Origin: Anaeramoeba ignava BMAN
Taxonomy: Eukaryota; Protista; Anaeramoebae
Direction: 5' to 3'
Assembly (NCBI GenBank): GCA_028826165.1
Contig: JAPDFW010000020.1
Coordinates: 36,713 to 77,882, forward strand
Length of the DNA: 41,170 nt
The notes under the pieces are model-generated. The model did no database searches. It had not been told where the DNA came from and worked only from the letters and a program-made list of their open reading frames with translations. How positions within the stretch are numbered: the first letter of the stretch is position 1; every line of letters starts with the position of its first letter. A program made the translations under genes and the position numbers. This document shows, piece by piece, positions 10,325 to 40,722 of the stretch.

Positions 10325-13300
10325 TCATTTTTCTTTCAAAATTTGGATTAAATTTTTTCCAATTCTTTGAATTGTTTGATCATGTGAAAATTTTGTTATC
10401 GCTTTTTCAATAAGTAAAATTTTTTTATTAGTATTTCTAATTTTTGGAAAATCTAATTAAAATTAAAATTAAAATTAAAATTAAAAATTTAAAATTAAAA
10501 ATTTTTTAATTATTATTTACCAGTTTTTGAAATTATATTAAATAAAGAACAACATGCATTTTCTTGAACATCTTGAGAATTCGGAAAAAGCTTCATTGAT
10601 TTAATTACTGCTTGAATTCCTTTTAATCTAACAATTTTGATTCGATTTTCTATTTTCAATTAAAATTTTCAATTAAAATTTTCTTCTTGTTTTCTTAATA
10701 TTTTTAAAAATAACCTTCATAAAAAGCTAAATTCCCTAAAGCAAGACATCCATAATTTTGAAGATCATGATTATTAGTATTACTAAGCATGGCTTTAATT
10801 ATTATTTCAATTCCTCCTAATGATCCAATTTTGATCCGATTTTCTTTTTAAAAATTTTTTCAATTAAAATTTTTTTCAATCCAAATTTTTTTCAATTAAA
10901 AATTTACCATCATTTCCAAAAGAAAGTATCCACAAAGATTCACAACCTTTTTCTGGAACATCCCTTATAAATGATAAATTTTTCATTGCTTGAATTATTG
11001 CTTCAATTCCTCTTAATTGTTGAATTTCAATTTTATTTTCTATTTTAAAAATTTTTTCAAAAAAATTATTTTCTATATTTGTTTCCCAATTTTTTTTCTT
11101 TCCAATAAAAAATACTTTCATCAAATCCTGCAATTTGTGCTAAAGCACAACATCCTGAATATTGAACATTTGGATTGTATGAAAAATTATTCATTGATTG
11201 AATTATTGGTTGAATTCCTCCTAAATTTCTAATCAATGTTTTGTTTTCTAATTTTGGATTTAATTTTGAATTTAATTTTTGAATTTTGAATTTTGAATTT
11301 AATTTTGAATTTAAATTTTGAATTTAATTTAATTTTGAATTTAATTTTGAATTTAATTTTGAATTTAATTTTGAATTTAATTTTGAATTTAATTTTGAAT
11401 TTAATTTTGAATTTAATTTTGAATTTAATTTTGAATTTAATTTTGAATTTAATTTTGAATTTAATTTTGAATTTTGAATTTTGAATTTTTGATCTAATTA
11501 ACCTAAATTTGAAAATGATAAATTTCCTAAAGCTCGACCTCCAAAATATTGAATAGATTCATCATTTGGAAAATTAAATAATGTTTGAACTAATGTTTCA
11601 ATTCCATGCAAATTTCTAATTTCATTACCATTTTCTTTTTTGATTATTAAAGGAAAACAAAATCACAAATTGTTTTTGATTTGTATAAATATAAATATAA
11701 ATATAAATATAAATATAAATATAAATGTTTATTTAACTGTAATTAAGTGCAAGATTTAAAAAAGCTCCACAACCATGATATTGAATACTTGGATCATTTG
11801 AGAAATTATTCATTGCTTTTATAATTGGCTCAATTCCTTTTAATTTTCTAACTATAGATTTATTTTCTTTTTTATTTTTATTATTTTTAATTTTATTATT
11901 TTTAATTTTAATTTTTATTTTTTTTGAAATAAAAGTCTACTTTCATTAACAACAATTCCCCATAAAGCATTTATTCCATGATCTTGAATATCTTTATTAT
12001 TTGGGAATTTATTCATTGCTTTAATCACTGGTTCAATCCCTTTTAATTTTCTAACAGTAACTTTGTTTTCTTTTTGTTTTTTAATTTTGTTTTTAATTTA
12101 GTTTCGTTTTTAATTTAAATTTTGATTTATTTACGATAATCAACATCAATATTCCCTATTGCTCTACATCCATTACGTTGAACATCTTCATCATTTGGGA
12201 AATTATTCATTGCTTTAATTATTGGTTCAATTCCTTCTAATTCTCTAATTAATATTTTGTTAGCTAAACAATATTTTTTATAAATTAAAAGAATTTATTT
12301 TTGTTATTTTTTTTTTGCAAAGAATATTTCGAATTTGTTTTCATTTTAACTACTTTTTTCAATTCCAATATTTCCTAAAGCTCTACAACTATATTCTTGA
12401 ATTGATTTATTTGCTGAGAAATTAGTCATTGCTTTAATTAATAATTCAATTCCTTTTGAATCTACAACTTTAGATCTATTTTCTGTTTCAATTTTTTTAG
12501 TTATATATTTATATTTATATATCTATATTTATATTTATATTTATACTTTTTCTTTCAGTAATTCTTGAAAGAGAACGACATCCATATTCTTGAATATTTA
12601 TAAAATTAGAGAAATTTTCCATTGCTTTTGTTATTACTTCAATTCCTTTTAATTCAGATATTTTTTTGCGAAATTCTATTTTGAAAAAAAAAGAAAATGT
12701 TGAGAAAATTTTTAATTCAATTATAAATAAATATTTGAATCCATTTTTTTTTTCTTCATTAAAAAAAGCTTTTCTCTTTTGTAATTTTTGTTATAGATTT
12801 ACGATTTAATAAAACTAAATCACCTAAAGCACTACAACCTTGTTCTTGAATCTTTTCAGAAACGGGGAATTTATTTAATATTTCAATTATTAATTCCATT
12901 CCTTTTAATTCGAATATTTTTTGTCGATTTTCTGTTGTTTCATTATTAATAATAATATTTATATTAAGATTTATAATTATATTTATATTTATATTAATAT
13001 TAATATTTATTTTTGTTAAAGTACTATCTGAAAGATTTGCAAGATTTCCTAATGCAAAAATTCCATATTGTAAAAGTTCTTCATTATTTAAGAAATTTTT
13101 CATTGAATTTATGATTAAATCAATCCCTTTTAATTCTTCAATTACGATCTTATTGTCTAGATTATTTGATAGATAATTTTTATTTTTTGAAGAAAGAAGA
13201 TTCATTTTTAATTTAATTTTTAATTCAATTTTAATTTTATTTTTATTTTTATTTTCTATATTTTATCTACTTTCATCTAAACCTAAATTCCCTAAAGCAA

Positions 13301-14966
13301 GAAAAGCATTTACCAACATTTCACCATTATTTGGTAAATTAGTTATTGCTTGTATTATTTTTTCAATTCCTTGAAGCTGAAAAATTTCAATTTTCATTTC
13401 TTTTTTTTTTTTTCAAATAAATTTTTGGAAAAGAATTTTTGGAAAAGAATTTTTTAAAAGAATTTACGATCATCAGAACCTATATTTCCTAAAGCACGAC
13501 AACAATGTTCTTGAATATCAGGATTATTTGGAAAATTGCTCATTGCTTTAATAATTAATTCAATTCCTTGAAGTTGATAAACTAATTTTTTATTTTCTTT
13601 TGAAAATTGGATTTTTTGTAAAATTTAATTTTTAAAATTGGAATATATTTTCTAAAAATACCACTATTATAAATAACAATATTAGCTATTGCACAAATAG
13701 CTTTTTCTTGAATATTTGGATTTTCTGGGTATTTTTCTATAGATTGGATTGCAGCTTCAACTCCTTTAAATTTATTAATTTCAACTCTACCTTCTAATTA
13801 TTTAAGCATAATAGTGATTTTGGAATAAAAAAAATAACTCGAATTGATAAATTTATAAAAGAAATGAGTTGAAATTACTTTCATCTAAAGCTATATTGAT
13901 CAAAATACACAAAATGTTATATAAGATTACTTGATTTTGAGGGAAATTTATTATTGCATCTAATATTGGTTTAATTCCTTCTAAATTTCGTATTTCATTT
14001 GCTTTTAATTCTCTAGTTACCATTTTTTTTTCTTTTTTGATTTTGTTTTTGATTTTGATTTTGATTTTGATTTTGATTTTGATTTTGATTTTGATTTTAA
14101 TTTTAATTTTAATTTTGATTTTAATTTTGATTTTGATTTTGATTTTGATTTTGATTTTGATATTGATTTTGATTTTAATTTTTGATTTTTATTTTAATTT
14201 TAATTTTAATTTTAATTTTAATTTTGATTTTGATTTTGATTTTGATTTTGATTTTGATTTTGATTTTGATTTTGATTTTGATTTTGATTTTGATTTTGAT
14301 TTTGATTTTTATTTTGATTTTGATTTTGATTTTGATTTTGATTTTGATTTTGATTTTGATTTTGATTTTAATTTTGATTTTCATTTTCATTTTGATTTTG
14401 ATTTTTATCAATTTAATTTAAATTCTAATTTCAAAATTTACTATCATTATCACCAACTAATTGCTTTAAAATTATTGATGATTTTTCTTGAATAATTTCA
14501 TTTTTTGGAAATTTGCTAATAATTTGTATCATTTTTTTTAAATCAAATGATTGATTATTTTTTTCGTCTTGAATTTTAAAAATTTTAAAAAAAGAAAAAA
14601 AAAATTTAATTTTTTTCCCATTTTAATTTTTAATTTAAATTTTTAATTTAAAATTATGCCTTGAGTAATTGGATCATTTTCTGTAAATTCTTTTAAAATA
14701 TTTTCTATTGTTTGTTCATCTTCTAAAATTTCTGTTTCATTTTCTTTTGTAATTTCCATTTCATTAGAATTTCTTTAAAAAAAAATTTTGAATTGAAAAA
14801 ATTTTGAATTGAAAAATAAAGAATTTTAAACTTACAATTTTTCTTTTTCATTTTCAATTTCATTTTCAATTTGATTTTCATTTTCATTTTCATTTTCATT
14901 TTCATTTTGATTTTCATTTTCATTTTCATTTTCATTTTGTTGTTGTTGTTGTCTTTTATTACTCAT
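10325..14966 (-). CDS. Diverged multi-exon armadillo-repeat protein (20 exons: 3 N-terminal, 16 one-repeat-per-exon, 1 C-cap)
   Basis: Manual splicing gives MSNKRQQQ...; repeats such as ENKKLVYQLQGIELIIKAMSNFPNNPDIQEHCCRALGNIGSDD; all repeat introns are phase-1 GT-AG; ends ...GKNLIQILKEK* (TGA 10327-10325). Confidence 0.85.
11260..11490 (+). repeat. Intronic 12-mer repeat (GAATTTAATTTT)n
   Basis: Directly visible within an ARM-gene intron. Confidence 0.9.
14037..14405 (+). repeat. Intronic (GATTTT/AATTTT)n microsatellite
   Basis: Directly visible; explains the spurious ILIL/IKIK/FDFD ORFs. Confidence 0.9.
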
Positions 14967-18279: not shown

Positions 18280-18311
<32 letters not shown>

Positions 18312-18516: not shown

Positions 18517-21500
18517 TTAAACTTTTTCATAAGTAGATTGCTTTCTTGATCTTTTTCCTTTGAAAGTAAAGACGAGGAAACCAGCAAGGAAACCGACACC
18601 AAGAGAGCCCAAAACACCAAAAGCATATCCAGCTCCATTACAACCTGGGCAACTTGAAGTAATAACTTCTTGATAACAAGATAATTTTGTGCTGAAGAAA
18701 ATTTCAACCCAATTTGGTGTGTGATCACTGTGAAATAATACATCTTCTAATCTTCCAGTCTCGTCAAGATCACAAAAGAAATCATATTTCATTGAAAAAT
18801 TTTGATGTCCAAGTCCATCTAATTGATAATAATCAAGTGAAATTCCATCTTCAAGTGAAAACATAGCTATATTTTTTCAAAAATTTTAATTTTAATATTA
18901 ATTTTAATTTTAATTTGAATTTTAATTTTAATTTTAATTTTAATTTTAATTTTATTTTTAATTTTGATTTTAATTTTAATTTTAATTTTAATTTTAATTT
19001 TATTTTTAATTTTGATTTTAATTTTAATTTTAATTATATTTTTAATTTTGATTTTAATTTTAATTTTAATTATATTTTTAATTTTAATTTTAATTTTAAT
19101 TTTAATTTTAATTTTAATTTTAATTTTAATTTTAATTTTAATAATTTTAATTTTAATTTTAATTTTAATAATTTTAATTTTAATTTTAATTTTTAATTTT
19201 AATTTTAATAATTTTAATTTTAATTTTAATTTTAAATTTAATTTAATTTTAATTTTAATTTTAATTTTAAATTTAATTTTAATTTTATTAATTTTAATTT
19301 TAATTTTAATTTTAATTTTTATTAATTTTTAATTTTAATTTTAATTTTAATTTTAATTTTAATTTTAATTTTAATTTTAATTTTAATTTTAATTTAAATT
19401 TTAATTTTAATTTTAATTTTATTTTTAATTTTAATTTTCATTTCAAATTAAAATTTTAAAAATTACATAAATTAATTTTAACGATTTAAATTTTAATTTT
19501 GACCCATTGGTATACAACTTCCATCAACACGAAACATCCATCCTGGATTTGTATTTATACCACAACAAGGACAATAAGCAGTAAAATCAGGAACATTAGC
19601 ACAAACATTAGTGATATATAAATTTCCCTCATATCCCATATGTGAATAAGGTTCATCACTATATTCCATTAAAATTTAAAAAAAATATTATTTATATTTA
19701 TATTTATATTTATATTTATATTTATATTTATATTTATATTTATATTTATATTTATATTTATATTTATATTTATATTTATATTTTTTTATTTATATTTATA
19801 TTTATATTTATATTTATATTTATATTTATATTTATATTTATATTTATATTTATATTTATATTTATATTTATATTTATTTATATTTATATTTATATTTATA
19901 TTTATATTTATATTTATATTTATATTTATATTTATTTTTTTTATTTTATATTTATATTTATATTTATATTTTGATTTATATTTATATTTATATTTATATT
20001 TATATTTATATTTTATTTATATTATATTTTATATTTATATTTATATTTATATTTATTTTATATTTATATTTATATTTATATTTATATTTATATTTTATGT
20101 TTATATTTTATATTTATATATTTATATTTATTTTATGTTTATTTATATTTATATTTATATTTATATTTATATTTATATTTATATTTATATTTATATTTAT
20201 ATTTATATTTATATTTAATTTATATTTATATTTATATTTATATTTATATTTATATTTATATTTTATTTATATTTATATTTATATTTATATTTAATTTTAT
20301 ATTTTATATTTATTTTATATTTTATATTTATATTTATATTTCATTTTTTATATTTATATTTATTTTTATTTATATTTTATTTATATTTATATTTATATTT
20401 ATATTTATATTTTATATTTATATTTATATTATATTTATATTTATATTTATATTTATAGTTTATATTTTATATTTTCATATTTTTTTATATTTTATATTTA
20501 TATTTTATATTTATATTTATATTTATATTTATATTTATATTTTATATTTATTTATATTTATATTTTTATTTATATTTATATTTATATTTATGTTTATATT
20601 TATATTTATATTTATAATTATATTTTATATTTATATTTTTATTTTTTTATGTTTATTTTATTTTATATTTTATATTTATATTTATATTTATATATTTATA
20701 TTTTATTTATGTTTATGTTTATGTTTTTATTTATTTATGTTATATTTTTATATTTTATTTTATATTTATATTTTATTTATATTTATATTTATATTTATGT
20801 TTATATTTATATTTATATTTATATTTATATTTATTTTATTTATATTTATATTGATATTTTATTTATATGTTTATATTTATATTTATATTTATATTTATGT
20901 TTTATTTATTTATTTTTTATATTTTTATTTTATATTTATATTTATATTTATATTTATATTTATATATGTTTTTATTTTATTTTTATATTTATATTTATAT
21001 TTATATTTATATTTATATTTATATTTATTTATTTTATATTTTATATTTATATTTATATTTATATTTATATTTATATTTATATTTATATTTATATTTATAT
21101 TTATATTTATATTTATATTTATTTTATATTTATATTTATATTTATATTTATATTTATATTTATATTTATATTTATATTTATATTATTTATTTCTATATTT
21201 ATATTAATATTTATATTTATATTATTTATTTCTATATTTATATTTATATTAATTATTTCTGTATTTATTTTTGATAATCAAATAGATTATTGAATTAATT
21301 TTATTCAATAATTGATTATTTTTTTATTTTTTATTTTTTTATTTAAATGAAAAAAAATTTTTTAGAAAGAGATTTACTATCTCATTAATTGAGAAAAATC
21401 ATAATAATGTGAACTACCGTTTTCATCCTCTAAAGTAACTGTGCAATACTGAGGAGCTAAAGTAAATATCTGTTGTGAAATAACAATAAGAACAAGTAAA

Positions 21501-21867: not shown

Positions 21868-22407
21868 ATGACAAATATTTTATTTCCAAATTCAACAAAT
21901 TCAATATTTCATCAAGATCAAGAAAATCAAACATTATCTCGTTTTAATTCAAAAGATTTTTCACAAAAAAAGCAAATAAATTTATCAAAAAAAGAAAGAA
22001 AACCACTTGGAGATTTAACAAATCGGAAAAATCAAAATCAATTAAAAAAAGGAATTTCAAGAACAAAATCAATTCCAACTCAAAAACAAAAACCAAAAAC
22101 GAAATCAACAACAAAAACAATAACAAAAAAACAATCAAAAGTAAAAAAGAAAAAAATCCCAAATATTGAATATGCTCCTCCTTCAAATAACAACTTTAAT
22201 ATGAACGATTTCTTATTTTTTGCTTCGCCTTCAGAATCTTCTTTTAATTTTAATAACTCAATTTTGGAACTTGAAACCCCTTTTTTTAATTCAATTGATC
22301 AAAATCCAAAAAATGATGAAATCTCTTTTCCTAATTCTTTTGAAATTGAAGATACAAGTCAATTTGAAATGGCAGATTTTGTTGATTTAAATAATGGATT
22401 TATTTGA
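21868..22407 (+). CDS. Securin-like protein (APC/C substrate, putative separase inhibitor)
   Basis: 179 aa and disordered; KEN-like IFHQDQEN, D-box RKPLGDLTN, pseudosubstrate-like PNIEYAPP; basic N-half and acidic/Phe-rich C-half. Confidence 0.7.
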   Translation: MTNILFPNSTNSIFHQDQENQTLSRFNSKDFSQKKQINLSKKERKPLGDLTNRKNQNQLKKGISRTKSIPTQKQKPKTKSTTKTITKKQSKVKKKKIPNIEYAPPSNNNFNMNDFLFFASPSESSFNFNNSILELETPFFNSIDQNPKNDEISFPNSFEIEDTSQFEMADFVDLNNGFI

Positions 22408-22494: not shown

Positions 22495-22655
22495 TTTTTT
22501 AATGAAAAAAATAAATGCATTTGAATCTTTAAAAAAAAAATTCATTTCGTAAAATTTTGATTTATAAAATAATTCATCTAACTTTTGTAAATCCTCCAAA
22601 AATAGAATAATTTTTCTTTTTTTCAGTAAAATTTCTGGTTTTTGTTTTCTTTTTT
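22495..22655 (-). pseudogene. Degenerate TLDc-domain relic
   Basis: Minus strand reads ...NYSIFGGFTKVR* (cf. TLDc IFGGFTxxGW), then KDSNAFIF(fs)SLK (cf. DxxAFIFSL), with a stop and frameshifts. Confidence 0.6.
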
Positions 22656-23980
22656 AAATAAAATTAGATTTTATATATTAAGTAAAAAAGAATTGGGAAA
22701 AAAATTTTAATTATTTCTGTTCTTTTGATTTTCCTTCATTAAATTGTATTTTTTAAATAGTTCTTTTTTATAAAATTTAAAGTAAAATTAATTAAATTCT
22801 TCTTTCAACTTTTTACAAAAATTTAATTAATTTTAAAAAGATAAAATTATAAAAGATAAATATAAGAATAAATTTCATTTCTTTTTTTATGGAATGAATT
22901 CTTAAAATTTTTATTTGAGAAAACTTGAAAAAGAAATGGAAAAAAATGAAAAATTTATTTTAAAAAAAAAATTATTTTTCATTTTTTTTTTCATTTTTTT
23001 TTTTAAATGGAGAAAAAAATTCAAAATACTTTACAAAAATTGATCAAAAAACCAAAAAAACAAAGTAATAATTAAATTTAAAAAATAATAATTTTTTTTT
23101 TTCAATACAAATTTTTTTTAAACTTTGATTTTTTGAATTTTTTGAATTTTGGATTTGGTTTAAAATTTATTTAAGAGTGTATATTTTTCTTATTTAATTT
23201 TCATTCAAAAAAATTAAAATTAAAATAAAATTTCAATTTATTTAATTAAGAAAAGAAAAAAATTTAATAAGAAATCAAATTATGAAAATAAGATTATTTT
23301 TATTTTTTCAATTTCATCAAATTTTTTATTTTGATTTTACTTTATTAAAATTTATAATAAATCATTTAAATCCAAAAATAAAAAAAATTTTAATTTATGA
23401 GAAGAAAATGATTCAACATACACTCTTAAATGAATTTTAAACCAAATCCAATTTTAACAATAGAAGAAGTTATAAATTGGATGAATCAATTTCCAGAAAA
23501 TGAAAAATTACAAGAAAATTGTTGTATTGCTTTAAAAAAACTTGGAGAAGGTAATCAAAATAAAAAAAGGAAAAATGAATTTAATTTAAATTAAAAACAA
23601 ATATTAATAAATTTCAATAGGAGTTAAAGTTGAACGTAAAAAATTAGAAGAAATCAAAATGACAAAATTTAATGCAATTGAATCAATTATTCAAGCAATA
23701 AATAATTTTCCAAATAATGAAAAAATCCAAGAAGCAGCTATTTCAATTTTAAAAGATGTTGTTATTGATTCCAGTAAAAAAATCCCATTTAATATTCCTT
23801 ATAATTTTAAACTTATTTATATTATTCTTTTTAAAAAATCAAAAAGAAAATCGAATCAAAATTGTAGAATTAAATGGAATTGAATTAATTATTAAAGCAA
23901 TGAATAATTTTCCAAAAAATGAAAATATTCAATTAAGTGGATGCTTGGCATTATTAGATATTGGTGTTACTTCAGGTAAT
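22552..23980 (+). repeat. Segmental duplication copy 1 (upstream region plus 5' exons of ARM gene A); paralogous to ~33021-34430
   Basis: Near-identical sequence including the ~400-nt first intron. Confidence 0.9.
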
Positions 23981-26900
23981 TAATTATATCTTTTTTTTAG
24001 ATTAATCCCAATTTTAATATTTTTAAAAAATAAAATAGAAAATCAAATCAAAATTAGAGAATTAAATGGAATTGAATCAATTATTAAAGCAATGAATAAT
24101 TTCCCAAATAATGAAAATATTCAATGGAGAGGATGTTGGGCATTATTGAATATTAGTATTGATTCAGGTAATTAATTAAATAAATTATTCCATTTTTTTT
24201 AGATTAATTCCCATTTTATTTATCATTTAAAAAATAAAAAGAAAATCAAATCAAGATTAGAGAATTAAATGGAATTGAATCAATTATTAAAGCAATGAAT
24301 AATTTTCCAAATAATGAAAATATTCAATGGAGAGGATGTTGGGCATTAAAGAATATTAGTACTAACTCAGGTAATCAAATAATTGATTAAAATAAATTAT
24401 ATCTTTGTTTAGATTAATCCCAATTTTATGTATTATAAAAAAGAAAATGAAAATCGAATCAAGATTAGAGAATTAAATGGAATTGAACCAATTATTAAAG
24501 CAATGAATAATTTCCCAAAAAATGAAAATATTCAATTAAGAGGAAGTTTTGCATTAATGAGTATTGGTGTTGATTCAGGTAATCAATTAAATAAATTATT
24601 CCATTTTTTTTAGATTAATTCCAATTTTATGTATTATTTAAAAAATAAAAAAGAAAATCGAATAAAAATAAGAGAATTAAATGGAATTGAACCAATTATT
24701 AAAGCAATGAATAATTTCCCAAAAAATGGGAATATTCAATGGGCTGGATGTTGGGCATTAATGAATATTAGTGCTAATACAGGTAATTAATTAATGGAAA
24801 CAAATATCTTTTTTTTTAAGATTAATTCTTTATGTCTTATGAAAAAAAAAAGAAAACAAAATCGAAATTAGGGAATTAAATGGAATTGAACCAATTATTA
24901 AAGCAATGAATAATTTCCCAAAAAATGAAAATATTCAATGGAGAGGATGTTGGGCATTATTGAACATTAGTGTTGATTCAGGTAATTAATTAAATAAATT
25001 ATTCCATTTTTTTTTAGATTAATTCCAATTTTAATATTTTTAAAAAATAAAACAGAAAATCAAATCAAAATAAGAGAATTAAATGGAATTAAATCAATTA
25101 TTAAATCAATGAATAATTTCCCAAATAATGAAGATATTCAATTAAGAGGATGTTTGGCATTAATGAATATTAGTGTTAATTCAGGTAATTAATTAAATAA
25201 AAAAAAAATTATTTTGGAAAGATTATTAATTATTTTATAAATAAATAAAAAGAAAATCAAATCAAAATTAGAGAATTAAATGGAATTGAATCAATTATAA
25301 AAGCAATGAATAATTTTCCAAATAATGAAGATATTCAATGGAGAGGTTGTTGGGCATTAATGAATATTAGTTCTAATAAAGGTGATTAATTAATTGAAAC
25401 AAATTATATCTTTTTTTTTAGATTAATTCCAATTTTATGTATTATTTAAAAAATAAAACAGAAAATGAAATCAAAATTAGAGAATTAAGTGGAATTGAAT
25501 CAATTATTAAATCATTGAATAATTTCCCAAATAATGAAGATATTCAATTAAGAGGATCTTTGGCATTAATGAATATTAGTGTTAATTCAGGTAATTAATT
25601 AAACTGAATTATTAATTTTTGAAAAGAATATTAATTATTTGAAAAAATAAATAAAAAGGAAATCGAATAAAAATTAGAGAATTAAATGGAATTGAATCAA
25701 TTATTAAAGCAATGAATAATTTTCAAAATAATGAAGATATTCAATTAGCAGGATTTGATGCTTTGAATAACATTAGTATGAATCAAGATAATTAATTAAA
25801 ATAAATGATATTTTTTTTTTGGGATTAATTTCAATTTTATTATAATTTGGAAATAAAATAGAAAATGGAATCAAAACTAATGAATTAAATGGAATTGAAT
25901 CAATTATTAAAGCAATGAATAATTTCTCAAATAATGAAAATATTCAATTAGCAGGATTAAATGCTTTGGACAATATTATTATTTATGCAGGTAATTAATT
26001 AAACAAATGATATCTTTTTTTTTGAGATTAATCCATATTTTATGTCTTATGAAAAAATAAAATAGAAAATCGAATTAGTGAATTAAATGGAATTGAACCA
26101 ATTATTAAAGCAATGAATAATTTCCCAAATAATGAAGATATTCAATTAAAAGGATTAAATATTTTGGACAATATTATTATTTATGCAGGTAACTAACTAA
26201 ACAAATGATATCTTTTTTTTTGAGATTAATCCATATTTTATAATTATGAAAAAATAAAAAGCAAATAGAAACAAAATTAGTGAATTAAATGGATTTAAAC
26301 CAATTATTAAAGCAATGAATAATTTCCCAAATAATGAAAATATTCAATTAAAAGGATTAAATATTTTGGATAGAATGAGTAATAATCAAGGTAATTAACT
26401 AAACTGAATTATTGATTTTGAAAAGAAAACTAATTATTTGAAAAAATAAAACAGAAAACCAAATCAAAATTAGTGAATTAAATGGAATTGAACCAATTAT
26501 CAAAAGCAATGAATAATTTTCCAAAAATAATGAAGATATTCAACAGGTTGGATGTTGGATATTAACGAATATTAGTTATAATTCAGGTAATTAACTAAAC
26601 TGAATTATTGATTTTGAAAAGAAAACTAATTATTATAAAAAATAAAATAGAAAATGAAATCAAAATTAGTGAATTAAATGGAATTGAATCAATTATCAAA
26701 GCAATGAATAATTTTCCAAAAAATGAAGATATTCAATTAAGAGGATGTTGGACATTATTGAATATTGGTGTTAATAAAGGTAAATAATTAAAATTATATC
26801 CTTATTTTGAGATTATGAAAAAATAAATAAAACAGAGAATCGAATCAAAATTAGAGAATTAAATGGAATTGAACCAATTATTAATGCAATGAATAATTTC

Positions 26901-27956
26901 CCAAATAATAGAGATATTCAATTAAAAGGATGTTGGGCATTAATGAATATTAGTGTTAATAAAGGTAAATAATTAAATAAAAAGATCGAAAAAGATATTC
27001 ATTTTAGAAATAAATAAAACAGAAAATCAAATTAAAATAAGAGAATTAAATGGAATTGAACCGATTATTAAAGCAATGAATAATTTCCCAAAAAATGAAG
27101 ATATTCAATGGAAAGGATGTTGGGCATTATCGAATGTTAGTGTTGATTCAGGTAATTAATTGAAACAAATTATATCTTTTTTTTTAGATTAATTCCAATT
27201 TTATGTATTATTATAAAAAAATAAAACAGAAAATCAAATCAAAATAAGAGAATTAAATGGAATTGAATCAATTATTAAAGCAATGAATAATTTTCAAAAA
27301 AATGAAAATATTCAATTAAAAGGATGTTGGGCATTAGCGAATATTAGTGTTAATAAGGGTAATTAATTAAATAAAAACAGAAAAAATTATATCTATTTAG
27401 TGAAAAATATTAATTATTTTAAAAAAGCAAATAAAATCATAATCAGTGAATTAAATGGAATTGAACCAATTATCAAAGCAATGAATAATTTCCCAACTAA
27501 TGAATATATTCAATGGAAAGGATGTTTGGCATTATCGAATGTTAGTGTTGATTCAGGTAATTAATTGAAACAAATTATATCTTTTTTTTAGATTAATTCC
27601 AATTTTATGTATTATTATAAAAAATAATAAAAAGAAAATCAAATCAAAATAAGAGAATTAAATGGAATTGAATCAATTATTAAAGCAATGAATAATTTCT
27701 CAAATAATGAAAATATTCAATTAGAAGGATTATATGCATTATCAAATATTTCTTTAGATAATAAAGGTAATTAATTAATTAATCAAAAATAAAGAAAATG
27801 AATTATAAAAAATTTTTATTTTTTCCAATAGAAAATATAAAAGAAATCCAAAGATTAAATGGAATTAATTTGATTATTCAAACATTGAAAAATTTCCCAA
27901 ATCAAGAAAAAATACAAGAAATAGGAAACAAAATACTTCAACATTTATTTGATTGA
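23007..27956 (+). CDS. ARM-repeat exon-array gene A: 3 N-terminal exons, 20 single-repeat exons and a C-cap exon
   Basis: ATG 23007 MEKKIQNTLQKLIKKPKKQ; phase-1 exons, mostly 129 nt, encoding ENQIKIRELNGIESIIKAMNNFPNNENIQWRGCWALMNISVNS-type repeats; ends GNKILQHLFD* (TGA 27954-56); repeat exon 10 has an AT donor and exon 14 an in-frame stop. Confidence 0.85.
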
Positions 27957-28042
27957 ATTTTATTCATTTTTCTTTTATTTTCATTTTTTCAAATTTTTAC
28001 AAATTCGAATAAAATGAATTCAAATAAAAAACAAAAACAAAA

Positions 28043-28757
28043 ATATTGTTTGTTCTTCTGATACAGTTTACTTATTAAGTTCAAATCAAAATTGTTATGG
28101 TTTTGGATCTAATTTTCATTGTCAACTTGGATTAGATTTTGAAACACTTAAAATATCTGAAAAACCTGTTTTAATGATGAAAAATGTTTCTAAAGTCTTT
28201 TCAGGAATTTCTTCTAATTCTGTTTTTATTTTAAATTCAAATCAAAAATTATTTGGATGTGGAAAAAATAACAATAGTCAACTTGGATTAGGTCCAAACA
28301 AAAGAAAAGATATTCATGAATTAACTCAAGTTCAAAGTATTCCAAAAGGCAAAATAATCGATATTCAAATGAGTAAAGGTCATTCAATAATGTTGATTGA
28401 AGATGAAAATGAAAAAAGAAAAATTTATTCATGTGGAAATTATGAATTAAATGGATTTGGTAGAAGTATCAATAAATTTACTGAACTCAAATCATCTTTT
28501 TTTGAACATGGTGATGTTATTGATTTTTCTGTTGGAGAAAATCATACTTTGATTTTAATATCAAATCGTACAATTATTGGATTTGGAAATAATGAATGGC
28601 GTCAATTAGGAACGAAAAAAAAATACTTTTATCAAACAAAACCAATTCGAATTAAACTTCATAAATTAACATTCAATATTTCTGATTATCATCTTTCTTG
28701 TGGTTTTCAAAATTCATTTATTTATTACATTTCTTCTCCTTTTTCTAATCTTGAAAC
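28043..28757 (+). pseudogene. Internal fragment of the RCC1-BTB gene (RCC1 blades only); duplicate of ~39399-40110
   Basis: Near-identical to the downstream gene; lacks its first ~130 codons and the BTB domains. Confidence 0.85.
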
Positions 28758-28857
28758 ATTTTTGATCTCTTCTTTCCTTTTTTAGGAAATAAACTAAGAA
28801 AATTATTATTATTTTTTATTTTCATTTTTCATTTTTTTTTTAAAATAAAATTTACAA

Positions 28858-31800
28858 ATGCAAAAAAAAATCCAAAATTCTTTACAAAGCTTTATCACCA
28901 GTTCAACACAAAGTAATAAATCTATTTTCCAAAAAAAAAATTGTAAAAAAAAAATTAAAAACAAAAATTAGTTGTTACGATAGAAGAAGTTATAAATTGG
29001 ATGAAACAATTTCCAGAAAATGAAAAATTACAAGAAAATTTTTGTATTGCTTTAAAAAAACTTGAAGAAGGTAATCAAATAAAAAAAGGAAAATTGATAA
29101 AAAATTAAATTAAAAACAAATATTAATAAATTTAAATAGGGAATGGAGTTGAACTCTCGAAAGCAAAAGGAATTAAAATTGCAAAATTAAATGGAATTGA
29201 ACCAATTATTAAAGCAATGAATAATTTCTCAAATAATGAAAGTATCCAAGAAGACTCAATCTCAATTCTAAAAGATGTTGTTATTGATTCCCGTAAAAAA
29301 ATTTACATTTAATATTTTAATTCCAATTTTAATAATAATAATATTATTAATTAATTAAAAAATTTGGAAAAATAAAGAAAATCAAATCAAAATAAGAGAA
29401 TTAAATGGAATTGAACCAATTATTAAAGCAATGAATAATTTCCCAACTAACGAAGATATTCAATGGAGAGGATGTTGGGCATTAATGAATATTGGTATTA
29501 ATTCAGGTAATTAAATAAATCAAATTACATCTTTTTTTTAATATTAAAAAATCATTATTATTCTTTGTGAATTCAATAGAAAATGAAATCAAAATAAGAG
29601 AATTAAATGGAATTGAACCAATTATTAAAGCAATGAATAATTTCCAAACTAACGAAGATATTCAATGGAAAGGATGTTGGGCATTAATGAATATAAGTGT
29701 TAATAAAGGTAATTAATCAATTAATTAAATAAAAACATAAAAAATTTTATTTATTTAAGGAAATAAAATCAAAAAAAGAAAATAAAATCAAAATAAGTGA
29801 ATTGCATGGAATTGAAACAATTATCAAATCAATGAATAATTTCCCAAAAAATGAAAATATTCAATGGAGAGGATGTTGGACATTATGGCATATTTCTTTT
29901 AATGAAAGTAAAAATCAAAATCAAAATCAAAATCAAAATCAAAATCATTTGATTGATTTAAATACAATTTAATTTAAAAATATCGGTTTTTTGAAATAAA
30001 TAATAAATAAAAAAAGAAAATAAAATCAAAATTAGAGAATTAAATGGAATTGAACCAATTATCAAAGCAATGAATAATTTCCCAAATAATGAAAATATTC
30101 AATTAAGAGGATGTTTAGCTTTGAATAATATTAGTATTAATTCAGGTAAATAATTAAAACAAATTATATCTTTTTTTTAATATTTGTTATTAATTCTAAT
30201 TTATTATTATTATTATTATCATTATTATTATTTGGAAATAAAACAGAAAATAAAATCAAAATTAGAGAATTAAATGGAATTGAACCAATTATTAAAGCAA
30301 TGAATAATTTCCCAAAAAATGAAAATATTCAATTAAAAGGATGTTTTGCATTAATGAATATTAGTGTTAATTCAGGTAATTAATTAAAATTATATCTTTT
30401 TTTAATATTAAAAAATCATTATTATTCTTTGTGAATTCAATAGAAAATGAAATCAAAATTAGAGAATTAAATGGAATTGAATCAATTATAAAAGCAATGA
30501 ATAATTTCCCAAATAATAAAGATATTCAATGGAGAGGATGTTGGGCATTAATGAATATAAGTGTTAATAAAGGTAATTAATCAATTAATTAAATAAAAAC
30601 ATAAAAAATTATATTTATTTAAGGAAATAAAAAATCAAAAAAAGAAAATAAAATCAAAATAAGTGAATTGCATGGAATTGAAACAATTATCAAATCAATG
30701 AATAATTTCCCAAAAAATGAAGATATTCAATGGAAAGGATGTTGGGCATTATGGCATATTTCTTTTAATGAAAGTAAAATCAAAATCAAAATCATTTGAT
30801 TGATTTAAATACAATTTAATTTAAAAATATCAATTTTTTTGGAAATAATAAATAAAAACAGAAAATAAAATCAAAATAAGAGAATTAAATGGAATTGAAT
30901 CAATTATCAAAGCAATGAATAATTTCCCAAATAATGAAAATATTCAATTAAGAGGATGTTTAGCTTTGAATAATATTAGTATTAATTCAGGTAAATAATT
31001 AAAACAAATTATATCTTTTTTTTTAATATTATTACTTTGAATTTGAATTTGAATTTTAATTTTATATGATTATTTGGAAATAAAAAAGAAAATAAAATCA
31101 AAATAAGAGAATTAAATGGAATTGAATCAATTATTAAAGCAATGAATAATTTCCCAAAAAATGAAGATATTCAATGGAAAGGATGTTGGGCATTAATGAA
31201 TATTAGTGTTAATTCAGGTAATTAATTAAAATTATATCTTTTTTTTAATATTAAAAAATCATTATTATTCTTTGTGAATTCAATAGAAAATGAAATCAAA
31301 ATTAGAGAATTAAATGGAATTGAACCAATTATCAATGCAATGAATAATTTCCAAACTAATGAAGATATTCAATTAAGAGGATGTTGGGCATTAATGAATA
31401 TAAGTGTTAATAAAGGTAATTAATCAATTAATTAAATAAAAACATAAAAAATTATATTTATTTAAGGAAATAAAAAATCAAAAAAAGAAAATAAAATCAA
31501 AATAAGTGAATTGCATGGAATTGAAACAATTATCAAATCAATGAATAATTTCCCAAAAAATGAAAATATTCAATGGAGAGGATGCTGGACATTATGGCAT
31601 ATTTCTTTTAATGAAAGTAAAAATCAAAATCAAAATCAAAATCATTTGATTGATTTAAATACAATTTAATTTAAAAATATCGGTTTTTTGGTAAATAAAT
31701 AATAAATAAAAACAGAAAATAAAATCAAAATAAGTGAATTAAATGGAATTGAACCAATTATCAAAGCAATGAATAATTTCCCAAAAAATAAAGATATTCA

Positions 31801-32907
31801 ATTAAGAGGATGTTTAGCTTTGAATAATATTAGTATTAATTCAGGTAAATAATTAAAACAAATTATATCTTTTTTTTTAATAATATTACTTTGAATTTGA
31901 ATTTTAATTTTAATTTTATATGATTATTTGGAAATAAAAAAGAAAATAAAATCAAAATTAGAGAATTAAATGGAATTGAACCAATTATCAATGCAATGAA
32001 TAATTTTCCAAAAAATGAAAATATTCAATGGAAAGGATGTTGGGCATTAATGAATATTAGTGTTAATAAAGGTAATTAATTAAAATTATTTCTAATTTAA
32101 TATTAAAAAATCATTATTATTCTTTGTTAATTCAATAGAAAATGAAATCAAAATTAGAGAATTAAATGGAATTGAACCAATTATTAAAGCAATGAATAAT
32201 TTCCCAAATAATGAAGATATTCAATGGAGAGGATGCTGGGCATTGGTGAATATTAGTGTTAATAAAGGTAATTAATCAATTAATTAAATAAAAACATAAA
32301 AAATTTTATTTATTTAAGGAAATAAAAAATCAAAAAAAGAAAATAAAATCAAAATAAGAGAATTAAATGGAATTGAAACAATTATCAAATCAATGAATAA
32401 TTTCCCAAAAAATGAAGATATTCAATGGAGAGGATGTTGGACATTATGGCATATTTCTTTTAATGAAAGTAAAAATCAAAATCAAAATCAAAATCAAAAT
32501 CAAAATCAAAATCATTTGATTGATTTAAATACAATTTAATTTAAAAATATCGGTTTTTTGGTAAATAAAAAATAAATAAAAACAGAAAATAAAATCAAAA
32601 TAAGAGAATTAAATGGAATTGAATCAATTATCAAAGCAATGAATAATTTCGAAAAAAATGAAAATATTCAATTAAGAGGATTATATGCATTATCAAATAT
32701 TTCTTTAGATAATAAAGGTAATTAATTAATTAATCAAAAATAAAGAAAATGAATTATAAAAAATTTTTATTTTTTCCAATAGAAAATATAAAAGAAATCC
32801 AAAGATTAAATGGAATTAATTTGATTATTCAAACATTGAAAAATTTCCCAAATCAAGAAAAAATACAAGAAATAGGAAACAAAATACTTCAACATTTATT
32901 TGATTGA
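28858..32907 (+). CDS. ARM-repeat exon-array gene B: 3 N-terminal exons, 16 single-repeat exons (period-4 higher-order repeat) and a C-cap exon
   Basis: ATG 28858 MQKKIQNSLQSFITSSTQ; all introns phase-1 GT-AG; no lesions noticed; TGA 32905-07. Confidence 0.88.
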
Positions 32908-33020
32908 ATTTTATTCATTTTTCATTTTTCATTTTTCATTTTTCATTTTTTCAAATTTTTACAAATTAAATAAAATGAATTCAAATAAAAAACAAAAACA
33001 AAAATGAAAGCCAATGAATG

Positions 33021-34430
33021 AAATTTTGATTTATAAAATAATTCATCTAACTTTTGTAAATCCTCCAAAAATAGAATAATTTTTCTTTTTTTCAGTAAAA
33101 TTTCCGGTTTTTGTTTTCTTTTTTAAATAAGATTTAGATTTTAAATATTAAGTAAAAAAGAATTGGGAAAAAAATTTTAATTATTTCTGTTCTTTTGATT
33201 TTCCTTCATTAAATTGTATTTTTTAAATAGTTCTTTTTTATAAAATTTAAAGTAAAATTAATTAAATTCTTCTTTCAACTTTTTACAAAAATTTAATTAA
33301 TTTTAAAAAGATAAATTATAAAAGATAAATATAAGAATAAATTTCATTTCTTTTTTTATGGAATGAATTCTTAAAATTTTTATTTGAGAAAACTTGAAAA
33401 AGAAATGAAAAAAATGAAAAATTTATTTTAAAAAAAAAATAATCTTATTTTTTTTCATTTTTTTTTTTAAATGGAGAAAAAAATTCAAAATACTTTACAA
33501 AAATTGATCAAAAACCAAAAACAAAGTAATAATTAAATTTAAAAATAATAATTTTTCAATACAAATTTTTAAACTTTTTGATTTTTGAATTTTTGAATTT
33601 TGGATTTGGTTTAAAATTTATTTAAGAGTGTATATTTTTCTCATTTAATTTTCATTCAAAAAAATTAAAATTAAAATAAAATTTCAATTTATTTAATTAA
33701 GAAAAGAAAAAAATTTAATAAGAAATCAAATTATGAAAATAAGATTATTTTTATTTTTTCAATTTCATCAAATTTTTTATTTTGATTTTACTTTATTAAA
33801 ATTTATAATAAATCATTTAAATCCAAAAATAAAAAAAATTTTAATTTATGAGAAGAAAATAATTCAACATACACTCTTAAATAAATTTTAAACCAAATTC
33901 AATTTTAACAATAGAAGAAGTTATAAATTGGATGAATCAATTTCCAGAAAATGAAAAATTACAAGAAAATTGTTGTATTGCTTTAAAAAAACTTGGAGAA
34001 GGTAATAAAATAAAAAAATTTAAAATGAATTTAATTTAAATTAAAAACAAATATTAATAAATTTCAATAGGAGTTAAAGTTGGACGTAAAAAATTCGAAG
34101 AAATCCAAATAGCAAAATTAAATGCAATTGAATCAATTATTCAAGCAATAAATAATTTTCCAAATAATGAAAAAATCCAAGAAGCAGCTATTTCAATTTT
34201 AAAAGATGTTTCTATTTATTCCCGTAAAAAAATTCCATTTAATATTCCTTATAATTTTAAAATTATTTATATTATTCTTTTTAAAAAATGAAAAAGAAAC
34301 TATTATCATAATCAGTGAATTAAATGGAATTGAATTAATTATTAAAGCAATGAATAATTTCCCAAAAAATGAAAATATTCAATTAAGTGGATCTTTGGCA
34401 TTAATGAATATTAGTGCTAATTCAGGTAAT
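33021..34430 (+). repeat. Segmental duplication copy 2 (includes part of the TLDc relic on the minus strand)
   Basis: Matches 22552-23980. Confidence 0.9.
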
Positions 34431-37400
34431 TAATTAACCAAATTATATCTCTTTTTTAGATTAATTCCTATTTTATTTATCATATAAAAAATAAAAAAGA
34501 AACTATTATCAAAATAAGTGAATTAAGCGGAATTGAATCAATTATCAAAGCAATGAATAATTTCCCAAATAATAAAGATATTCAATCAAGAGGATGTTTT
34601 GTATTAATGAATATTAGTGCTAATTCAGGTAAATAATTAAATATAAGCATAAAACAAAAATATTTATTTAGGGAAATAAAAAATAAAGCAGAAAATAAAA
34701 TCAAAATTAGAGAATTAAATGGAATTAAACCAATTATCAATGCAATGAATAATTTCTCAAATAATGAAGATATTCAATGGAGAGGATGTTGGGCATTAAT
34801 GAATATAAGTGTTAATTCAGGTAATTAATTAAATAGAAGTATAAAACAAAAATATTTATTTAGGGAAATAAAAAATAAAACAGAAAATAAAATCAAAATT
34901 AGAGAATTAAATGGAATTGAACCGATTATTAAAGCAATGAATAATTTCCCAAATAATGAAGATATTCAATGGAAAGGATGTTGGGCATTGGCGAATATTG
35001 GTGTTGATTCAGGTAATTAATTAATTGAAACAAATTATATCTTTTGTTTAGATTAATTCCAATTTTATGTATTTTTATAAAAAATAAAAAAGAAAATCAA
35101 ATCAAAATTAGAGAATTAAATGGAATTGAACCAATTATTAAAGCAATGAATAATTTCCCAAATAATAAAGATATTCAATGGAGAGGATGTTGGGCATTAA
35201 TAAGTATTAGTGTTAATTCAGGTAAATAAATAAATTGAAACATAAAAATTGTATTTATTTAAGGAAATAAAAAATCAAAAAAAGAAAATAAAATCAAAAT
35301 AAGAGAATTAAATGGAATTAAACCAATTATCAAAGCAATGAATAATTTTCCAACTAAAGAAGATATTCAATGGAAAGGATGTTGGGCATTGGCGAATATT
35401 GGTGTTAATTCAGGTAATTAATTATTAAACAAATTATATCTTTTTTTTAGATTAATTCCAATTTAATGTATTATTATAAAAAATAAAAAAGAAAATCAAA
35501 TCAAGATTAGAGAATTAAATGGAATTAAACCAATTATTAAAGCATTGAATAATTTTCCAAAAAATGAAAATATTCAATTAAGAGGATGTTTTGCATTAAT
35601 GAATATTGGTGTTAATTCAGGTAATTAATTAATTGAAACAAATTATATCTTTTGTTTAGATTAATTCCAATTTAATGTATTATTATAAAAAATAAAACAG
35701 AAAATCAAATCAAAATTAGAGAATTAAATGGAATTGAATCAATTATCAAAGCAATGAATAATTTTCCAAAAAATGAAGATATTCAATGGAAAGGATGTTG
35801 GGCATTAGAGAATATTGGTGTTGATTCAGGTAATTAATTAATTGAAACAAATTATATCTTTTGTTTAGATTAATTCCAATTTAATGTATTTTTATAAAAA
35901 ATAAAAAAGAAAATGAAATCAAAATTAGAGAATTAAATGGAATTAAACCAATTATCAATGCAATGAATAATTTTCCAAATAATAAAGATATTCAATGGAA
36001 AGGATGTTGGGCATTAATAAGTATTAGTGTTAATTCAGGTAAATAAATAAATTGAAACATAAAAAATTGTATTTATTTAAGGAAATAAAAAATGAAAAAG
36101 AAAATAAAGTCAAAATTAGAGAATTAAATGGAATTGAACCAATTATCAAAGCAATGAATAATTTTCCAACTAACGAAGATATTCAATGGAAAGGATGTTG
36201 GGCATTGGAGAATATTGGTGTTAATTCAGGTAATTAATTATTAAACAAATTATATCTTTTTTTTAGATTAATTCCAATTTAATGTATTGTAAAAAATAAA
36301 AAAGAAAATAAAATCAAAATTAGAGAATTAAATGGAATTGAGTCAATTATTAAAGCAATGAATAATTTTCCAAAAAGTGAAAATATTCAATTAAGAGGAT
36401 GTTTTGCATTAATGAATATTGGTGTTAATTCAGGTAATTAATTAATTGAAACAAATTATATCTTTTGTTTAGATTAATTCCAATTTTATGTATTATTATA
36501 AAAAATAAAACAGAAAATCAAATCAAAATTAGAGAATTAAATGGAATTGAATCAATTATCAAAGCAATGAATAATTTCTCAAGTAATGAATATATTCAAT
36601 TAAAAGGATGTTGGGCATTAATGAATATTAGTGTTGATTCAGGTAATTAATTATTAAACAAAAACATAAAACAAAAATATTTATTTAGGGAAATAAAAAA
36701 TAAACAAAAAAGAAAATAAGATCAAAATTAGAGAATTAAATGGAATTGAATCAATTATCAAAGCAATGAATAATTTCCCAAAAAATGAAGATATTCAATT
36801 AAGAGGATGCTTGGCTTTGGGTAATATTGGTGTTAATTCAGGTAATTAATTAATTAATTGAAACAAATTATATCTTTTGTTTAGATTAATTCCAATTTAA
36901 TGTATTATTATAAAAAAATAAAACAGAAAATCAAATCAAAATTAGAGAATTAAAAGGAATTGAATCAATTATCAATGCAATGAATAATTTCTCAAAAAGT
37001 GAAGATATTCAATTACAAGGATGCTTTGCATTAATGAATATTGGTGTTAATTCAGGTAATTAATTAATTGAAACAAATTATATCTTTTTTTTAGATTAAT
37101 TCCAATTTAATGTATTATTATTATTATGATTATTTGGAAATAAAAAAGAAAATGAAATCAAGATTAGAGAATTAAATGGAATTGAATCAATTATCAAAGC
37201 AATGAATAATTTCCCAAATAATGAAGATATTCAATTAAAAGGATGTTGGACATTAATGAATATAAGTGTTAATTCAGGTAATTAATTAATTAATTGAAAC
37301 AAATTATATCTTTTTTTTTAGATTAATTCCAATTTTATGTATTATTATAAAAAATAAAAAAGAAAATCAAATCAAAATTAGAGAATTAAATGGAATTGAA

Positions 37401-38922
37401 TCAATTATTAAAGCAATGAATAATTTCTCAAAAAGTGAAGATATTCAATTACAAGGATGCTTTGCATTAATGAATATTAGTGTTGATTCAGGTAATTAAT
37501 TATTAAACAAAAACATAAAACAAAAATATTTATTTAGGGAAATAAAAAATAAAACAGAAAATAAAATCAAAATTAGAGAATTAAATGGAATTGAATCAAT
37601 TATCAAATCAATGAATAATTTCCCAAATAATGAAAATATTCAATGGAAAGGATGCTGGGCATTATCGAATATTAGTGTTAATTCAGGTAATTAATTAATT
37701 GAAACAAATTATATCTTTTTTTTTAGATTAATTCCAATTTTATGTATTATTATAAAAAAATAAAACAGAAAATCAAATCAAAATTAGAGAATTAAATGGA
37801 ATTGAATCAATTATTAAAGCAATGAATAATTTCTCAAATAATGAAAATATTCAATTAAAAGGATGTTGGGCATTAATAAGTATTGGTGTTAATAAGGGTA
37901 ATTAATTAATTAATTATTTATTTATTTATTTTGGAAAGAATATTAATTAAATAAAAAATAAAAAAGAAAATCAAATCAAAATTAGAGAATTAAATGGAAT
38001 TGAATCAATTATTAAAGCAATGAATAATTTTCCAAAAAATGAAAATATTCAATTAAGAGGATGCTTTGCATTAATGAATATTGGTGTTAATTCAGGTAAT
38101 TAATTATTAAATAGAAAAATAAAACAAAAATATTTATTTTGGAAAGAATATTAATTAAATAAAAAACAAAAAAGAAAATCAAATCAAAATAAGAGAATTA
38201 AATGGAATTGAATCAATTATTAAAGCAATGAATAATTTTCCAAAAAATGAAGATATTCAATTAAGAGGATGTTGGGCATTAATGAATATTGGTGCTAATT
38301 CAGGTAATTAATTAATTAATTATTTATTTATTTATTTTGGAAAGAATATTAATTAAATAAAAAACAATCAAAAAAGAAAATAAAATCAAAATAAGAGAAT
38401 TAAATGGAATTGAAACAATTATCAAATCAATGAATAATTTCTCAAAAAATGAAGATATTCAATTAAGAGGATGTTGGACATTATGGCATATTTCTTTTAA
38501 TGAAAGTAAAAATCAAAATCAAAATCAAATTCAAAATCATTTGATTGATTTAAATACAATTTAATTTAAAAATATCGGTTTTTTGGAAATAAATAAAAAA
38601 AGAAAATGAAATCAAAATTAGAGAATTAAATGGAATTGAATCAATTATCAAAGCAATGAATAATTTCTCAAATAATGAAAATATTCAATTAAGAGGATTT
38701 TTGGCTTTATCAAATATTTCTTTAGATAATAAAGGTAATTAATTAATTAATCAAAAATAAAGAAAATGAATTATAAAAAAATTATTTTTTCCAATAGAAA
38801 ATATAAAAGAAATCCAAAGATTAAATGGAATTAATTTGATTATTCAAACATTGAAAAATTTCCCAAATCAAGAAAAAATACAAGAAATAGGAAACAAAAT
38901 ACTTCAACATTTATTTGATTGA
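33471..38922 (+). CDS. ARM-repeat exon-array gene C: 3 N-terminal exons, 22 single-repeat exons and a C-cap exon
   Basis: ATG 33471 MEKKIQNTLQKLIKNQKQ; phase-1 exons, mostly 129 nt; TGA 38920-22; no lesions noticed. Confidence 0.88.
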
Positions 38923-39007: not shown

Positions 39008-40722
39008 ATGAATGAAATTTTCTTTTTTGGCAAAAACTTATTTTTTGTATTCATAGATGAAATTCCATCAATAAAAGAACCATTTCCATTCAATTTTCCA
39101 AATGAAAAACAAATTAAACAAATTATTCCCAAAGAAACATCTGCAATTTTCCTTTTTGAAAATGGGGAAGCAATTGAATATAGAGATGATGCAAATAAAT
39201 ATTTAAAAAAAATTCAATTCAAAAATATCAAAAAAATAATTTCTGGTTATCAAATTGAAGCCATTTTAACTGAAGATGGGAACTTATTTGCTGAAGGATT
39301 AATGAAAACTTTATTAGGTATAAGAAATCGTAATTTTTCAACGAAATATCCTAATATTTCATCATTAATTGAAGATCCAAATGATAGAATAATTGAAGAT
39401 ATTGTTTGTTCTTCTGATACAGTTTACTTATTAAGTTCAAATCAAAATTGTTATGGTTTTGGATCTAATTTTCATTGTCAACTTGGATTAGATTCTGAAA
39501 CACTTAAAATATCTGAAAAACCTGTTTTAATGATGAAAAATGTTTCTAAAGTCTTTTCAGGAATTTCTTCTAATTCTGTTTTTATTTTAAATTCAAATCA
39601 AAAATTATTTGGATGTGGAAAAAATAACAATAGTCAACTTGGATTAGGTCCAAACAAAAGAAAAGATATTCATGAATTAACTCAAGTTCAAAGTATTCCA
39701 AAAGGCAAAATAATTGATATTCAAATGAGTAAAGGTCATTCAATAATGTTGATTGAAGATGAAAATGAAAAAAGAAAAATTTATTCATGTGGAAATTATG
39801 AACTAAATGGATTTGGTAGAAGTATCAATAAATTTACTGAACTCAAATCATCTTTTTTTGAACATGGTGATGTTATTTGATTTTTGTTGAGAAAATCATA
39901 CTTTATTTTAATATCAAATCGTACAATTATTGGATTTGGAAATAATGAATGGCGTCAATTAGGAACGAAAAAAAAATACTTTTATCAAACAAAACCAATT
40001 CGAATTAAACTTCATAAATTAACATTCAATATTTCTGATTATCATCTTTCTTGTGGTTTTCAAAATTCATTTATTTATTACATTCCTTCTCCTTTTTCTA
40101 ATCTTGAAGAAGATTTGATAAAAATATTTCGAAGAAAAGAATTTTGCGATATTTCATTTAAAACAATTAATCCAAATGAAAAGATTGAAGCTCATAAATT
40201 AATATTGAAATACAGATTAAAAGATCAAAATCAAATTGAAAAACTTCAAGAAATTATTTCAAAAATCAATTAAAGAATCAAATCAAATATTTGAAATGAT
40301 TTATTCAAATAATTCCAAAGTAAATCCAAAATTATATCCTGAAATTAAAGAAATTATAAATTTAAATGAAAAAATTGAAGAATCAATGAAAAGAATTTAT
40401 TTAAATGAAAATGAAAAAGAATAAAATGAAAATGAAAATGAAAATAAAAAAAAGTATAAATTCCCTAAATTAATATTAATAATGAGAAGTGAATTATATC
40501 GAGGAATGTTTTTATCTGTAACTGAAGATAAATCTAATAAAGTTACAGATTATAGTGAATTAAGTAATAAATCATTTCAAATATTTGAATATTGGATTTT
40601 ATTCAAATCAAATTAAAGATGAAATTCAAATTACACAACAAATTATCGATGAACTTAAAATGAGATTGATTATTTTCAATTAAATCAAAGCAAATCCAAA
40701 TTTATTGGATTTTATTAATTAA
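39008..40722 (+). CDS. RCC1-like beta-propeller plus C-terminal BTB/POZ domain(s); frameshifted in this assembly (error or young pseudogene)
   Basis: RCC1 motifs YGFGSNFHCQLG, FGCGKNNNSQLGLG, IGFGNNEWRQLG; BTB start FCDISFKT...IEAHKLILKYR; second BTB-like part LILIMRSELYRGMF; indels at ~39875-39905, ~40265 and further 3'. Confidence 0.8.

Follow-up and report, generated by a model that had tools for sequence, protein, structure and literature searches.

What do long arrays of nearly identical armadillo (ARM) repeats recognise in a unicellular eukaryote, and does each repeat act as one letter of a code? The question is raised by a 41,170-nucleotide stretch of DNA (here called the window; contig JAPDFW010000020.1) from Anaeramoeba ignava BMAN, an anaerobic, AT-rich amoeba that houses bacterial symbionts (PMC11550330). 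Three tandem genes, A, B and C, carry 58 ARM repeat exons between 23847 and 38734, the same number that a sequence-only reading of the window had counted. Their arrays contain 20, 16 and 22 repeats, respectively, and each phase-1 exon encodes one 43-aa LRRK2-type armadillo repeat. Taken as a whole, the best explanation, to which we give a probability of about 0.6, is that these genes come from a shuffled exon-ARM family with a selected groove, whose members may be ubiquitin-ligase receptors. In appearance the family is closer to a natural library of variable protein binders than to a code in the style of transcription activator-like effectors (TALEs).

All three genes share one layout: three head exons come first, then the 129-nt repeat exons in an array bounded by phase-1 GT-AG introns of 56–117 nt, and last a cap exon with the stop codon. 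They were read exon by exon from junctions and lengths; no protein entry encoded by the window was found in the database searches. The repeat exons share a mean nucleotide identity of 86%, and no two of them are identical. The cap protein sequences of the three genes are identical and their flanking DNA is 92–96% identical, while the arrays differ in the number and order of repeats. In gene B the array is a 4-exon unit repeated four times (nucleotide identity 0.94 at lag 4 versus 0.86 at other lags). Moreover, in every array tested linkage falls off with distance, and repeats thus recombine within arrays. Every repeat exon of gene C is intact. In gene A, exons A4 and A12 have in-frame shifted acceptors, exon A10 has the donor AT in place of GT, and the assembled exon A14 (26455-26586) contains an in-frame stop because of +1 and +2 insertions within A runs; the irregularities of A10 and A14 may be consensus errors.

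The best Pfam score of the window exons is to ARM_LRRK2 (PF23744), with single exons below the gathering cut-off and full-length family proteins above it. As a stand-in for the window proteins we used the AlphaFold2 model of a database relative, P0151, whose repeats match the window exons in an ungapped register. The model has a predicted local distance difference test score of 96 and three helices per 43 aa (helix 1, residues 43-8; helix 2, 12-21; helix 3, 26-39), and Foldseek aligned it to ARM structures with template modelling scores of 0.65–0.8, the best matches being designed armadillo repeat proteins (ArmRPs) and beta-catenin. A three-helix repeat of about 42 aa and a superhelix, the marks of an armadillo solenoid, are both present in the model, and the window repeats are predicted to form such a solenoid. 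Exon B1 aligns with a designed ArmRP repeat without gaps across helix 3, and the asparagine ladder of armadillo helix 3 is present, with N38 at ArmRP N37. The register first proposed for the helix is therefore right (30=Q29, 31=E30, 34=W33, 37=S36, 38=N37). In designed ArmRPs, Glu30 and Trp33 lie on the surface at the peptide site, and the conserved asparagines hold the peptide backbone (PMC4756613).

Variation among the window exons concentrates on one face of helix 3, at sites 30, 31, 34, 37 and 41, a face that corresponds by alignment to the peptide groove of designed ArmRPs. The entropy along this helix has a periodicity of 105 degrees per residue and points about 170 degrees away from the core, and the seven sites of the helix-3 face have a higher entropy than other surface sites (1.63 versus 0.82 bits, p 0.008). 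The sequence-only reading had named sites 30, 31, 34, 37, 38 and 40-42 as variable and residues 1-29 as almost constant. Its eight sites are jointly more variable than the rest (mean entropy 1.55 versus 0.49 bits, permutation p 1e-4), and its list of gene A residues at sites 30-31/34/37-38 agrees with every exon, for A14 only when the two A-run insertions are read past. However, site 38 is mostly constant (Asn in 80% of window exons), site 40 is small and buried, and residues 2-29 carry 44% of the total entropy. Site 37 has the highest value (2.86 bits), followed by site 3, with six residues (2.10), 41 (2.03), 43 (1.86, absent from the original list), 34 (1.79), 31 (1.69), 14 (1.52), 24 (1.49), 27 (1.17) and 23 (1.10). 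Sites 43 and 3 come after helix 3, in the linker and in helix 1; the likely match of site 3, ArmRP position 4, was presumably randomised in the first designed library. Six-site combinations number 40 among 56 window exons and 242 among 299 exons. The groove in the window is aromatic and net basic, with 1.5 Lys/Arg versus 0.9 Asp/Glu per repeat at eight sites, which is compatible with acidic ligands but is not proof of them.

The same pattern extends through the genome. One exon used as genome query gave 1409 candidate places, 150 of which were scored, and among the matches listed in three genome searches the family is present on at least 38 of the 147 contigs. We sampled 20 other loci by similarity to one exon and took 243 intact exons from them; their exons encode 43 or 44 aa, the latter in a quarter of cases. 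Within-array entropy in these arrays correlates with that of the window (Spearman 0.83), with peaks at sites 3, 30, 31, 34, 37, 41 and 43. Asn38 is kept in 80–82% of exons. The variability of sites 14 and 24 is largely specific to the window. The best database matches to the family are A. ignava proteins named “aardvark”, and Pfam cross-hits include ARM_ARMC5 and ZER1-like. Our literature searches turned up no report of such armadillo-repeat arrays or of this A. ignava family, and the genome paper and its accessible supplements give no description of the family beyond this automatic name.

Several other members were noticed. A far longer array or cluster lies at C35:141000-158000, with about 80 exon spacings in 17 kb. 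Matches at C91:109274, C64:1354726, C108:137199 and C126:688698 lie within open frames of 440–493 aa and are possibly intronless or retro-copied members. Related ARM proteins (P0100/P0173 and P0033/P0171) are encoded on long metagenomic contigs, one labelled as a viral metagenome and another with a RING-H2 domain.

Is the variable face under selection? A codon model with shared synonymous rate (dS) was fitted on per-array trees, with sites classed as face, other surface and core. For the seven face sites, the ratio of nonsynonymous to synonymous rates (omega) came to 1.23–1.43 in the window, with p 0.07 under one frequency model and 0.001 under another, and to 2.4–2.7 in the other arrays, while it was 0.68–0.78 at other surface sites and 0.16–0.29 in the core. 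The groove-face ratio is about two to three times that of other surface sites, and with five face sites it is higher in 21 of 21 arrays, as diversifying selection on specificity residues, put forward from the sequence alone, would predict; the entropy comparison above agrees. Sites 3, 30, 31, 37, 41 and 43 pass Bonferroni correction. Since the repeats recombine, tree-based tests can be inflated, and we also made a tree-free count of distinct alleles. It gave 1.55 in the window, 1.88 over the 20 arrays and 3.48 in 14 young arrays, against a mean of 1.0 in neutral recombining simulations; the family values were never reached there, and the window value was reached in 2–5% of runs. As a result, the case for positive selection on the groove face is good across the gene family and marginal in the three window genes alone. 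Two mutational explanations were rejected. Regional hypermutation fails because helix-3 core codons have no raised third-position (silent) diversity, and adenine-specific mutagenesis of the diversity-generating retroelement type fails because the changes hit all four bases.

The function of the family is suggested by the domains joined to it. Of the 20 other loci, 13 carry a BTB open reading frame (ORF) immediately before the array, one has RING and one NUDIX, and five have no assigned domain. Annotated members include BTB-ARM, ARM-RCC1-BTB and RING-kinase-SH3-ARM proteins; BTB and ARM are combined, in the arrangement of Cullin-3 BTB substrate adaptors, in P0005, P0008, P0012 and P0042, and the genome annotation has ARM-RCC1-BTB fusions at other places (P0003, P0010, P0017, P0023). 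At phase-1 GT junctions the transcript-derived BTB-ARM protein P0042 agrees with genomic exons, which shows that exons of this kind are spliced in frame. No NACHT, NB-ARC or ROC-COR, the domains of NLR or ROCO receptors, was detected in the flanking ORFs or annotated members scanned. Genes A–C themselves lack BTB and RING, an RCC1-BTB gene being only their neighbour. Since BTB or RING is joined to most members, the likeliest job of the family, though a tentative one, would be that of ubiquitin-ligase substrate receptors against fast-changing, probably foreign bacterial or viral proteins; we infer both the ubiquitin-ligase and the immunity roles. Two oddities belong here. P0042 follows one gene (C74, L021) to residue 550 and another (C24, L022) from 543, the two being joined inside a repeat; this is most likely a transcript-assembly artefact, and inter-locus recombination would look alike. 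A NUDIX ORF (L015:1753-2559), a different possible effector domain, lies upstream of a diverged 29-repeat array.

We propose the following mechanism. The window genes are part of a large A. ignava LRRK2/ZER1-type armadillo family in which the repeat is a symmetric phase-1 exon, as their junctions attest. Unequal crossing-over alters the number and order of repeats, and recombination or conversion between repeats mixes alleles and keeps the scaffold uniform; both steps are visible in the 4-exon periodicity and the linkage decay. Selection retains the core and the Asn38 ladder and favours novel residues at the concave face of helix 3 and at sites 43 and 3, a preference seen in the family and weakly in the window. 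Since the selected variation lies at the groove face, each gene would offer a different aromatic, net basic groove, which, judging from ARM structures, may bind extended protein segments. Without BTB or RING, the window genes would be stand-alone binders or recent offshoots. A bolder form of this proposal, which we think improbable, makes A. ignava a natural counterpart of designed armadillo libraries, with exon modules of partly predictable peptide preferences that are recombined, and perhaps alternatively spliced, to give a large set of ubiquitin-ligase receptors policing symbiont, prey or viral proteins.

Some results weigh against selected ligase receptors. First, with class-specific dS the face omega falls to 0.8–1.1 in the window and 1.0–1.25 over the 20 arrays, and it exceeds about 1 only in the 14 young arrays (1.7–2.4), a subset chosen after seeing tree lengths; this is a conservative test, since on multi-step paths the silent steps are counted at those same codons. 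Second, site 24, which lies off the groove, has an omega of 2–3 in the window. Third, sites 3 and 43 are inferred to lie near the groove from alignment, not coordinates, and the BTB adjacency consists of ORFs beside arrays together with annotated proteins.

Among the alternatives, the one that survives best, though still unlikely, is that the arrays bind the cell's own expanded families, e.g. membrane-trafficking GTPases or regulators, and vary through specialisation of paralogues with no arms race. Among Pfam families the LRRK2 ARM domain, which binds Rab GTPases, comes closest. Phagosome-trafficking families are also expanded in Anaeramoeba (PMC11550330). However, very young arrays have near-identical flanks with reshuffled repeats, exons are broken and genes turn over, a picture that birth-and-death under conflict fits better than stable self recognition. 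Slightly less probable is relaxed constraint only, in which no other surface is as weakly constrained as the groove face and the rest is homogenised by conversion. It would give an omega near 1, as seen under class-specific dS both in the window and over all 20 arrays, but distinct amino-acid-changing alleles at the face exceed those of the neutral simulations in the young arrays (222 versus 51–67), in the 20 arrays (394 versus 126–161) and in the window (38 versus 15–19), and adjacent core codons show no extra silent change.

We regard a TALE-like code as very unlikely. In such a code, the few variable residues of a repeat would specify one ligand unit and the array would read a linear polymer. 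A near-identical scaffold, with its 86% mean nucleotide identity, a retained Asn ladder and recurring modules such as the WR/W/WH exon would suit it, and designed ArmRPs do read one dipeptide per repeat (PMC6838082). However, the variation is spread over 7–9 sites, with those 242 combinations in 299 exons; the top two entropy sites hold 17% of the total and lie 34 residues apart instead of forming an adjacent pair, and the variable sites make a stripe along helix 3 plus site 3 in helix 1. To our knowledge, ARM peptide sites are also shorter than arrays of 16–22 repeats. Moreover, ARM pockets are shared between neighbouring repeats; the pockets that armadillo binders form for one target residue and for the next have positions 29 and 33 in common (10.64898/2026.03.18.712636; PMC11228518). 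As a pocket of a designed ArmRP is built from two neighbouring repeats, the exons are not independent letters, and the analogy with the repeat-variable diresidues of TALEs, drawn in the sequence-only reading, is unsupported. Finally, an assembly or polishing artefact of the AT-rich tandem array is hardly credible. A-run frameshifts in A14 and several other loci would suit it, but no two window exons are identical and substitutions hit the same codons in 21 arrays with the core spared, whereas errors would not track a helical face.

Table 1. Positions of genes, exons and duplicated segments in the window
Feature	Position	Strand	Description
Gene A	23007..27956	+	three head and 20 repeat exons; about 1002 codons from exon lengths; GT-AG phase-1 junctions
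Gene A head exons	23007-23064, 23464-23550, 23621-23773	+	
Gene A repeat array	23847..27766	+	20 exons, 123-135 nt
Gene A terminal cap exon	27832-27956	+	
Truncated RCC1-BTB copy	28040..28766	+	98% identity to the RCC1-BTB gene after gene C; both ends cut
Gene B	28858..32907	+	three head and 16 repeat exons (29378-32717); about 828 codons
Gene B cap exon	32783-32907	+	
Duplicated segment	33021..34299	+	96% copy of 22552-23849 (1.3 kb upstream of and including the gene A head)
Gene C	33471..38922	+	three head and 22 repeat exons (34297-38734); about 1086 codons
Gene C cap exon	38798-38922	+	
RCC1-BTB gene	39008..40616	+	directly 3' of gene C; Pfam RCC1, tblastn to P0017; frameshifts as assembled
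Diverged ARM gene	10521..14005	-	at least 16 repeat exons, one repeat per exon; Pfam ARM_LRRK2 E 9e-7

A spliced fusion of gene C with the RCC1-BTB gene is not indicated, because the gene C cap exon ends in a stop and has no donor. The diverged ARM gene is an older member of the same one-exon-one-repeat family, and long microsatellites break up its exon-per-repeat layout. Elsewhere in the window, a large plus-strand ORF (931-6581) has tetratricopeptide repeat (TPR)-like segments, several frameshifts and a weak Pfam hit only, and a basic 179-aa plus-strand ORF (21868-22407) has a destruction-box-like motif and no Pfam match. Several kilobase-long AT microsatellites lie within minus-strand genes at 14035-21250, and the GC content drops to 1.6% at 20–21 kb.

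The pairing of an ARM substrate module with a ligase module is familiar from ARMC5, ZER1/ZYG11B, plant U-box-ARM proteins and Dictyostelium aardvark. Most of these are conserved genes whose repeats have diverged, unlike the young, near-identical, shuffled arrays here. The A. ignava arrays share with importin-alpha and designed ArmRPs the fold, the groove register and the Asn ladder (PMC4756613), but have Arg/Lys instead of Glu at the position-30 equivalent, a 43-aa LRRK2-type repeat and no importin-like domain, and their variation is natural. They offer several hundred natural groove variants at positions varied by protein engineers, from a free-living metamonad with bacterial symbionts, and give a concrete candidate for the recognition of foreign proteins by A. 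ignava. As one paper summarises them, the F-box and MATH-BTB families of nematodes likewise combine a cullin adaptor with a positively selected substrate-binding domain under birth-death evolution and are proposed to degrade foreign proteins (PMC4334554). In the A. ignava family, a tandem exon array able to recombine internally makes up the substrate domain.

Three further families resemble the arrays in how they evolve. First, the 90-bp-exon leucine-rich repeat (LRR) genes of Tetrahymena also show lineage-specific genome-wide expansion, equal-length exons in a single intron phase, varying exon number, ectopic recombination and fusion to other domains; those exons encode LRRs in phase 2, number tens of thousands and are linked to a retroelement (PMC6564038). 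Second, the WD40, ankyrin and TPR repeats of fungal NOD-like receptors (NLRs) have high internal identity, concerted evolution and positive selection on the binding face, but these proteins carry nucleotide-binding oligomerization (NOD) and effector domains, none of which was seen in the arrays sampled here (PMC4986451). Third, the ROCO LRR and NB-ARC-TPR arrays of brown algae, proposed as immune receptors, have in-phase one-repeat exons, shuffling and a positively selected concave face, the last matched here at the family level and marginally in the window, and alternative splicing has been shown for them; the repeats are ARM here versus LRR or TPR there, with BTB or RING in place of ROC-COR or NB-ARC (PMC3341825, PMC11378527). 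The fitting analogy is a repertoire of repeats that are shuffled and under positive selection, like those of the brown-algal genes and the fungal NLRs. With the A. ignava family, such repertoires would gain armadillo as a new scaffold and BTB/RING ubiquitin adaptors as a new output.

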